64,000 nt of DNA from Tubulanus polymorphus (lineage: Eukaryota > Animalia > Nemertea), in the NCBI RefSeq assembly GCF_964204645.1, contig NC_134033.1:15322655-15386654 (forward strand), written 5' to 3'. The notes beneath the pieces are model-generated. The model ran no database searches. It saw only the letters and a list, made by a program, of their open reading frames with translations, and was not told the DNA's origin. Each line of letters starts with the position of its first letter. The stretch's first letter is position 1. The translations under genes and the position numbers were made by a program. Positions 59,545 through 62,359 of this stretch are shown piece by piece.

Positions 59545-62359
59545 CTAAAATGTCGTGAATGTCGTTATGATTTGTTTCGGTTCTAACATCGGTGGTTTCG
59601 GTAGACTGGTGATCACTACTAGATAACACGTCCTCGGCGTCAAATCGGGGAAATTTCGGTACTCGTAAACTTGCTGAAAAAATAAATGAGATTTTATCAG
59701 TTTATTTTTCTTAAATTCGTTCTGCAGCTAACACTGACTGAAAACACACTAAATAAATTAGTTAAATTAGTTAACTTAGTTAAATTAGTTAAATTAGTTA
59801 AAATTTCCGTTTTTAAAGATGATACAAAAATCCATGCACAAGTAAGAATAAGTCTTTATTCGACGTTTCGACTTTATCCTGGTGGTCATGCTCAGGAATA
59901 CTGATGTTGTCCTCATTATAACCATTAATGAAACACTCAGAGTCCGTGTTGTTAATAGAATTTAAAATCCCTGCACTCTGAGAATAGTCCGAAATGTTTC
60001 CTCAACCTAATAGTTAATTCGACGTTTCGACATATTTCAACCAGATTCAAAAGTGTACGATATGCTTCCTTGAGCTAATGTTCCAGCTAATGACTAGTTA
60101 GTCAATATGTCAAATAAATCATTAGCTCATTTTACCGCTCAAAAGTAGATCGGAAGGACGATCAGAAGATTCGATTAGTTCTCATTGTCTTTTAACAGCT
60201 CATACTTGATTATTCCGCTAGATGGCGCATGTGTCTCTTACCTGATCGAAGATGTCATCTGGTAGTTTCCACGAAGATCGCGACAGATCGACAAGTCGAC
60301 ATTGATGTAGATTTGTTTCCGGACCTTGCAGGGTCAACAGAGTTATTTCAAAACCTTTCAGCGATCGTAAAGACTCTAGAAATGATATGAATATCGAATT
60401 CAATTTGACTCGGAACCCAGTTCTACAGTTGTGTGGATTTAATATGACTCTGAACTCAGTTCCACAGTTGTGTGGGTTTAATTTGACTATGGACACAGTT
60501 CCACAGTTGCCTGGGGTTCGATTTGACTCTGGGTCCAGTTCCACAGTTGTGTGGATTTAATATGACTCTGAACCCAGTTCCACAGTTGCGTGGGTTTGAT
60601 TTAACTCTGAATCAGTTCCACAGTTGTGTGGATTTAATATGACTCTAAACTCAGTTCCACAGTTGTGTGGGTTTAATTTGACTCTAAGTTCAGTTCCACA
60701 GTTGCGTGGGTTTAATTTGAATCTGAGCCCAGTTCCACAGTTGGGTTTAATTTGACTTTGGATCCAGTTCCACAGTTATGTGGATTTAATTTGACACTGA
60801 AACCAGTTGCGCAGTTGTGTTTGGCTATTGGAACCGGTTCCACAGTTGTGAGCTTAAGTATGAATCAAGAATCACCCTTACCATCGCTGGGTCCTTTCCA
60901 AGTAATTCTAACGCCTTGTTGAATGTGACCAGTTTTCGAGTCAATATACCTGTATGGTAAAGCTGTTAGGTTTACTGGCGCTGACGGCCACGAATTACTT
61001 TTGTAGTTTAAATTCCCACACACTAACAAAATAAATAAATTAGAATGTCATTTCAACTCATTTTCATTGCAAGATTTCGAAATATCGCGTTCCTTTTAGC
61101 ACGAGAAAAGCTGCAGAGCCGTGCTTTAACCGGTATCAATGTGGAGGCAGTATTGCATTACGCAACCAGATTTCGTCTAAAATTATGAGCTTTTCGCTTT
61201 TAAAAGTCCTTTATATAGGGGTATCGCTGGAACCGATAAAAAGTATGGCGTTATTACGAATTGTTATTAAGAATGGTATTTTTTCGCCGAATCGAGTTGA
61301 ATTAATCAAGAAAATTGTTCTCGGAAAAAGGATACGAGATAATGAGGTAATAACTGGTGTAACTGGTACCTATGATGCGCTGGTAACAAAAGCTCGTAAT
61401 TTTGGGTTAAATAAATCAACCTTTATACTATACAGGAAATGCGGAAATTGATAGTTCCCTGACAGTAGTATTCATTTCCCGTTGAATAATCCTATTTTGT
61501 TTATATATATATATATATATATATATATATATATATATATATATATATATATATATATATATATATATATATATATATATATATATATATATATATATAT
61601 ATATATATATATATATATATATATATATATATATATATATATATATATATATATATATATATATATATATATATATATATATATATATATTTTTTTTTTT
61701 TTTAGAAATATGGAGCGCTAGAAATTGAAATTTTACTCACGATCAACATCCTGTACTATCCGACATGGGAGACGCATCTGAAATAGAAATACAGTATAAA
61801 TTTAAACCCTGTTGACCCGAACAACGGCTTTCATGTCATGGCTACGTTTATCATGTAGCACAGTAGATTTAGAATATGTGAAAACGCGTTTTAGAATCAA
61901 TGTAATTTTTCTATTTTATTTTTCATTTATTTATTCCCTGAATAATTTACATCAATGAATACCAGATTCACAATATGACAATAGATAATTGATTTGTTTT
62001 GCATAATGCATGTAAACATATAAACACCCGTTCGGGAACGTGGATGTGCGAGGGGTTGGGCGTTCCCGATGAACTTCTCCGGCCATATTGAGAGTTCCCA
62101 GCGAGTGAGGGCTTCATTAGGATCGGCAAAATTAATGGTACCTTTGATAAAAGTTTGAGCTACGAACCTTTTCAGTACAGTTCAGTACTCCGCTTGTGTC
62201 GACGTCCATTTCTGGTACAATATCATCTGGAATCGCAGCGCTCCTAACAGCGGCCATTCCGCACATTTCTGGATGCCAATGCCCAGCGCCCAAATATCTA
62301 CCAGTCACCAGGGCCATCATAGAAGTAACAAAAGTGATAGCAATTTTAAGCGTGGCCAT
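59545..62359 (-). CDS. Secreted IL-17-receptor-ectodomain-like (FN3-like) protein, about 210 aa, 5 exons, no TM or SEFIR region
   Basis: Phase-consistent exons 62359-62168, 61777-61741, 61022-60882, 60375-60242, 59673-59545 (633 nt). Signal peptide [20 protein letters not shown]. The segment PSAPVNL...[29 protein letters not shown]...HQCRLVDL...[18 protein letters not shown] resembles the IL17RD/IL17RA D1 pattern (V.I.W.P...I..LKGF.V.L...QC...Y.V.V..FP). The ORF ends TFTTF*. Confidence 0.72.
59857..59900 (-). ncRNA. Degenerate minimal hammerhead motif (PLE-type) in intron 4 of the IL17R-like gene
   Basis: UAUUC-CUGAGCA-UGACCACCAGGAUAAAGUC-GAAAC-GUC-GAAUA. Helix I is perfect, but core G8 is mutated. 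Confidence 0.5.
60400..60855. repeat. About 39-40-bp tandem array (about 11 copies) amplified from a MITE terminus
   Basis: The unit cagttccacagttgtgtgg(a/g)tttaat(a/t)tgactctgaac(c/t) matches the left end of the 22449-22557 MITE family. Confidence 0.88.
61502..61703. repeat. (TA)n microsatellite (about 94 units) followed by a T-run
   Basis: Seen directly in the sequence. Confidence 0.98.

Follow-up and report, generated by a model that had tools for sequence, protein, structure and literature searches.

The 64-kb window analysed here (64,000 nucleotides of the nemertean Tubulanus polymorphus; contig NC_134033.1, positions 15,322,655 to 15,386,654) contains, on its minus strand, the gene LOC141911242. 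Its predicted product consists of a signal-peptide-like segment, a short Cys-containing lead-in and only one domain, which is of the type of D1, the first of the fibronectin type III (FN3)-like domains of interleukin-17 (IL-17) receptors. The gene spans positions 62359-59545 in five exons, with boundaries set by script (positions are those of the window):

62359-62168, minus strand: exon 1 from the second ATG, 64 codons, donor AAG/GTTCGT
62168..62437, minus strand: coding part of exon 1 from the NCBI start, N-terminal segment
61777-61741, minus strand: exon 2, a 37-nt micro-exon encoding 12 residues and ending in phase 1
61022-60882, minus strand: exon 3, 141 nt, phase 1 to phase 1
60375-60242, minus strand: exon 4, 134 nt, phase 1 to phase 0
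59673-59545, minus strand: coding part of exon 5, starting in phase 0, with the stop codon TAG at 59547-59545

All four introns are of the GT-AG type, and their phases (0, 1, 1, 0) are mutually consistent. An initial annotation made from the letters alone had proposed the same five exons; each lies where it was placed, and the protein strings quoted from them are present in the translation. A library search with exon 3 retrieved a 236-amino acid protein that was 100% identical over the exon and had the same five-exon model; another hit, a bacterial repeat protein, was dropped. The retrieved protein is NCBI XP_074658329.1, 'uncharacterized protein LOC141911242 [Tubulanus polymorphus]', the sole member of its cluster, and the NCBI model ends at the very TAG that had been proposed as the terminus. 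LOC141911242 is a single-copy, five-exon gene; it had already been annotated at NCBI, and its novelty is less than was implied. We used XP_074658329.1 as the whole-protein reference in searches, and single exons otherwise.

The two start codons are in frame, 26 codons apart. The upstream one, at 62437, is the NCBI start and has a weak context, while the ATG at 62359 has a strong one (G at both -3 and +4) and immediately precedes the hydrophobic segment. After this 20-residue stretch, exon 1 encodes a further ~45 residues, among which are Cys59, Cys87 and an NCT sequon. The domain itself is distributed over the remaining exons. Its Pfam match begins in exon 2, at residue 95; exon 3 encodes a conserved Cys, the motif WP..P.NLT..LPY and the first D1 strands; exon 4 encodes the middle strands with another conserved Cys (LRSLKGFEI...QCR...W); and exon 5 encodes the last two strands, from a 10-residue string to QIITTFTT.

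XP_074658329.1 had only two Pfam matches, both to IL-17 receptor ectodomain families: IL17R_fnIII_D1 (PF16556; E 1.9e-4, 21.6 bits), in which residues 95-223 aligned with profile positions 3-125 of 154, and ILCR1_N (E 0.005). As an assessment at the level of structure, we used the ESM Atlas, in which this very sequence is represented by a moderate-quality model (predicted local distance difference test score, pLDDT, 0.62). Residues 95-236 of this model were most similar to a cluster of a nematode ILCR1-type SEFIR receptor (TM score 0.81), followed by the clusters of IL-17RA (0.80), IL-17RD (0.72), and IL-17RE and IL-17RE-like proteins (0.67). Generic fn3 and phage-tail clusters scored 0.59-0.62, so that the matches to a generic FN3 family, against which the initial annotation had asked its claim to be checked, stayed at or below 0.62 as compared with 0.80-0.81 for the IL-17 receptors.

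The worm's own receptors provided a further comparison. The genome has three loci matching SEFIR (PF08357), the cytoplasmic domain of IL-17 receptors, all of them on the contig C3. Two genes, hereafter referred to as B1 and B2, lie in tandem:

C3:24457200-24505199 (~24.47-24.505 Mb): tandem receptor genes B1 and B2, SEFIR-bearing

Exons 3, 4 and 5 of LOC141911242 match three exons that lie upstream of the SEFIR exon in each of B1 and B2, and both order and strand agree. The exon boundaries coincide as well: exon 3 opens in phase 1 immediately ahead of the Cys codon and closes in phase 1, the end of exon 4 is in phase 0, and so is the start of exon 5. In shuffle tests, the pairs of exons 3, 4 and 5 gave z-scores of 6.9, 8.3 and 2.4, respectively (combined p ~1e-6), and BLASTP of XP_074658329.1 against the B1 exons yielded E values of 1e-4 for exon 3 and for exon 4, both aligned where expected. 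The counterpart of exon 4 in B1 and B2 reads NLRMLRGYEI...LCR...W, and that occupying the position of exon 5 reads ...VTVTSLP...TSLTF. Common to both sides are the Cys at the start of exon 3, WP..P..L..LPY, LR.L.G[FY]EI, the second Cys and TSLP. The differences are that B1 and B2 reside on another contig, are only ~30-35% identical to LOC141911242, and continue into further exons where LOC141911242 stops after D1. These downstream exons encode a second domain of the Ig_ILCR1 type (E 0.028 and 3.7e-4), then a transmembrane segment and then SEFIR (35.9 bits). B1 and B2 are genuine IL-17 receptors.

This kinship was seen only in comparison with the SEFIR-selected loci. Genome-wide searches with exons 3 and 4 returned only self-matches, and tblastn of XP_074658329.1 against the SEFIR loci gave no match in a genome-sized search space; the shuffle tests on exon pairs were used instead. 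An exon-2-like match (CRRVQSVD) was rejected as due to chance, being part of a palindromic repeat and lacking a copy in B1. As a separate observation, B1 and B2 represent a recent tandem duplication: they are ~75-90% identical including the introns, with a protein identity of 78% in D1 exon 3.

These results raise the question of whether the domain could belong to an ordinary FN3 protein that has no relationship with IL-17 receptors and resembles them by chance. The Pfam match lies below its curated cut-off, Pfam and PDB searches with single exons gave nothing useful, the queries being too short, and language-model features pointed to clusters of generic fn3 or of class I cytokine receptors, none of them reaching 0.9. 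On the other hand, the Pfam scan of XP_074658329.1 showed no match to fn3 itself (PF00041), and three independent lines, namely Pfam, the Atlas structure search and the exons of the paralogues, all indicate IL-17 receptors. Genome scans with PF16556, PF15037, PF16578 and PF25519 yielded nothing relevant even in the true receptor genes, and their blanks carry no weight. We consider a chance resemblance very improbable. The single lines are indecisive; taken together, they are convincing and support the assignment of the domain as a homologue of IL-17 receptor D1, in agreement with the initial claim of an IL-17 receptor-type FN3 domain, for which the intron phases shared with SEFIR-bearing receptors add a further argument.

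We then consider where the protein ends. XP_074658329.1 terminates at the last strand of D1. A scan with a 19-residue window found its sole hydrophobic stretch at the N-terminus (residues 26-46), and the C-terminus is polar. When the frame of exon 5 was continued past the stop, marked as X, and compared with the B1 exon, the two aligned over their full length and the stop codon was found to lie 4 codons ahead of the ancestral exon end, which has left a recognizable trace:

59530..59544, minus strand: what remains of the ancestral exon end, reading R-L-S-A in frame and then C+AA

At the same position, B1 has Q-L-S-A followed by C+GT, the splice donor, and B2 likewise has the donor GT. The ancestral splice donor is absent from LOC141911242, because C+AA replaces C+GT. 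Nor did we find the exons to which such a donor could lead. The B1 segments for the second domain (D2), the transmembrane helix and SEFIR showed nothing beyond chance and no decayed remnants when compared with the whole 64-kb window. SEFIR and Ig_ILCR1 (PF23608) had no match on the 16.5-Mb contig, C9, that carries the gene, the matches to Ig_ILCR1 in the genome being confined to C3 and C12; PF16578 had no match on C9 either, in a scan that was blank also in true receptor genes. The features downstream of the gene are as follows:

58617..59544, minus strand: presumed 3′ untranslated region, with AATAAA at 59315-59310 and 58622-58617
55180..57202, plus strand: 3′ end of a convergent plakin-like gene, with SH3_10 and Plectin repeat, which bounds the locus

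The initial annotation had reported only the more distal AATAAA, and had put the neighbouring gene at about 2.3 kb; the measured gap from its end at 57202 is 2,343 bases, and the Plectin repeat and plakin-type SH3_10 bear out its identification.

It could be argued that the gene model is incomplete and that transcripts bypass the stop codon, joining D2, transmembrane and SEFIR exons by way of the GTTAGA sequence within exon 5. This site does contain a GT, and gene predictions in a little-studied phylum can err. However, it has T at +3, and its use would remove the last D1 strand. GTTAGA is unlikely to be a hidden donor, because the homologous exon of B1 and B2 covers this same last strand and ends 4 codons past the stop. 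With no such exons in the window, no SEFIR or Ig_ILCR1 on C9 and the convergent gene 2.3 kb away, we regard an incomplete model as highly unlikely. Thus, the initial claims that no transmembrane or SEFIR exons follow and that the protein is gene-encoded and stand-alone were sustained by the missing receptor exons, the stop codon shared with the NCBI model and the loss of the donor GT. These results support the notion that LOC141911242 is a gene-encoded, stand-alone unit without a second domain, transmembrane helix or SEFIR. The comparison of sequences further suggests that it descends from a full-length receptor gene that was cut at the D1 boundary.

Other features of the window lie within the introns or farther away. 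The introns contain two repeats:

60398..60820, no strand assigned: array of a 39-bp satellite, 10.9 copies, occupying most of intron 3
61502..61690, no strand assigned: (TA)94 microsatellite in intron 2

The 39-bp satellite family is dispersed in the genome, with more than 100 places on C3, C4 and C6-C11 at 74-89% identity. In addition, positions 31189-43290 of the window harbour a cluster of at least five intronless open reading frames on both strands that resemble rhodopsin-type G protein-coupled receptors; one of them, at 34441-35541 (minus strand), matches the 7tm_1 and Srv chemoreceptor models.

The genome contains receptor-like loci other than B1 and B2. The third SEFIR gene, at C3:8931000-8937700, has the top SEFIR score (71.9 bits), exons of the FN3/Ig_ILCR1 type and a transmembrane exon; no similarity to the exons of LOC141911242 was detectable in it. 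At C3:9646000-9650500 (minus strand) there is a fourth IL-17 receptor-like gene with a D1 exon (C...VKIEWQ) and Ig_ILCR1-type, transmembrane and cytoplasmic exons; the cytoplasmic exon did not match the SEFIR model at E<=1 and may encode a very divergent SEFIR. An Ig_ILCR1-like exon at C12:8288525-8288755 (E 0.03) lies far from any SEFIR match and may be due to chance; the 20 kb around it had no match to the exons of LOC141911242 or to the receptor segments.

What, then, might a D1-only protein do? Its N-terminus has a hydrophobic core (residues 32-44) with V at -3 and G at -1 before R47. Neither a further hydrophobic stretch nor a tail resembling a glycosylphosphatidylinositol anchor signal is present, and the upstream ATG would give an unusually long, charged N-terminal region. 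The protein is probably secreted. The system on which it could act exists in the worm, whose genome has at least four IL-17 ligand genes, at C2:1343853, C2:30852826, C6:3808799 and C10:4973623, and at least three SEFIR receptors.

Structural work on vertebrate receptors indicates what D1 contributes to such a system. In the cryo-electron microscopy structure of IL-25/IL-17RB/IL-17RA, the cytokine contact sites 1 and 2 are on D1 and site 3 is on the linker and D2, site 3 being the largest cytokine contact of IL-17RB; the D1 tips make a tip-to-tip contact between receptors that is required for signalling (PMC9477748). As D1 holds sites 1 and 2 as well as the tip interface, a secreted D1 could trap ligand weakly or cap tips. 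We envisage that a full-length receptor ancestor would have given rise to a gene whose frame now ends 4 codons early, with the splice donor and all downstream exons lost, and that its secreted product would act extracellularly on the IL-17 system. It might do so as a low-affinity ligand trap, given that two of the three cytokine contact sites of IL-17RB are on D1, or by capping the membrane-distal D1 tip of the membrane receptors and so blocking their tip-to-tip pairing. A role as an IL-17 antagonist or carrier, as the initial annotation had suggested, is plausible. The explanation as a whole, a secreted D1-only protein of the IL-17 system derived from a truncated receptor gene, has in our judgement an even chance of being correct. 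More tentative, and somewhat less probable than that, is the proposal that selection maintains it as a soluble IL-17 receptor module encoded by a gene of its own, the first one known in an invertebrate, tuning signalling by trap or tip cap.

Several observations weigh against this explanation. The score of 21.6 bits for PF16556 is below the curated cut-off of 26. Two AlphaFold runs, with the single sequence and with the B1/B2 exon fragments (for which the MAFFT alignment misplaced the exon 5 fragments), reached a pLDDT of ~40 both times, and the structural evidence therefore rests on the Atlas model. The match of exon 5 is weak alone (z 2.4), with BLASTP favouring another register, and its kinship is argued chiefly from its position, phase and length together with the TSLP motif. 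The protein has neither the linker nor D2, hence no site 3, and its binding may be weak. The exhaustive library search with exon 3 yielded neither an orthologue nor a close relative among 1.8 billion representative proteins; a word search with XP_074658329.1 returned only itself, under a length filter that excludes full-length receptors. Finally, the 'LSA' still present in frame beyond the stop codon hints at a possibly recent truncation, in which case the conserved frame would reflect past selection on the full-length receptor and not on the short protein.

The last two points feed the main rival explanation, that LOC141911242 is a truncated relic: a former full-length paralogue in which the 3′ half disappeared and a stop codon arose, and whose open 5′ part is still called as a gene although its product is functionless or its transcript degraded. 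The change of the donor GT to AA and the R-L-S-A that follows the early stop, next to the Q-L-S-A of B1, are what such a relic would display, and the missing relatives fit it as well. Against this, none of the five exons and four introns has been disrupted and the conserved cysteines are in place despite ~65-70% divergence from the nearest paralogues, the absence of decayed downstream exons from the window makes the loss look not very recent, and the stop falls exactly at the domain boundary, leaving a foldable unit. To evaluate the intactness quantitatively, we simulated neutral substitution to 45-59% identity; exons 3-5 stayed free of stop codons in only 1-3% of the runs. LOC141911242 is ~30-35% identical to its nearest paralogues, and yet it keeps all splice sites and the Cys104/Cys175 pair. 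The simulation argues for past selection on the frame, which may date from the stage of the full-length receptor. All told, we think a mere relic unlikely, though not to be dismissed lightly.

Alternatively, LOC141911242 may encode a functional secreted protein that has moved off IL-17 biology, for example by reusing the D1 fold for another ligand or a microbial surface. Its high divergence from the receptors, its apparently lineage-restricted occurrence and the lack of the D2/linker contact site of vertebrate receptors (PMC9477748) would all accord with this idea. Nothing suggests another partner, however; the fold is closest to the IL-17 receptor clusters, and the cognate ligands and receptors are present in the worm. 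We rate such a departure as improbable, more so than a relic.

IL-17 signalling is ancient, and its ligands are expanded in marine invertebrates. We know of essentially no extracellular negative regulators of IL-17 outside vertebrates. Our literature searches brought up no description of an invertebrate gene coding for just the ectodomain of an IL-17 receptor. Invertebrate receptor surveys usually start from SEFIR (e.g. PMC5457136), and genes of the ectodomain-only kind are missed by them. If the preferred explanation, a secreted D1-only protein acting on the IL-17 system, is true, LOC141911242 would exemplify a class of regulators undetectable by such surveys, and its product, as a D1-only protein occurring in nature, would offer a minimal reagent to determine how much cytokine binding D1 carries alone, and likewise for D1's own share of the tip-to-tip pairing described in PMC9477748. 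If LOC141911242 is a relic, it still records a receptor gene cut at a domain boundary.

The closest analogues of LOC141911242 are vertebrate IL17REL and the soluble splice forms of IL-17RA. IL17REL is a separate vertebrate gene that resembles the IL-17RE ectodomain and has no SEFIR (PMC10143491). It is thus like LOC141911242 in being its own gene rather than a splice form, with a product that resembles an IL-17 receptor ectodomain without SEFIR. It differs in being IL-17RE-like (Pfam IL17_R_N, PF15037): XP_074658329.1 has no PF15037 match, a genome scan with this family was blank, as it was in true receptor genes too, and the IL-17RE-like cluster reached a TM score of only 0.67 with the Atlas model. 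LOC141911242 is also much shorter, consisting of D1 only. IL17REL is an analogue and not an orthologue, because the origins are independent.

Soluble IL-17RA isoforms, which arise by splicing (PMC13482007), are likewise secreted receptor ectodomains without a transmembrane segment or SEFIR. They are alternatively spliced products of a complete receptor gene that retain D1 and D2, whereas the locus of LOC141911242 has, in the 64-kb window, no transmembrane or SEFIR exons available for splicing. The nematode ILCR-1-type receptors (ILCR1_N, Ig_ILCR1 and SEFIR) provide the best structural match and the second Pfam match, and B2 of the worm also has exons of the Ig_ILCR1 type; these are membrane signalling receptors of ~780 residues, and LOC141911242 corresponds to their N-terminal domain only. 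LOC141911242 is an independent, much shorter, D1-only counterpart of the known soluble forms, and as a D1-only gene of an invertebrate it may be new.

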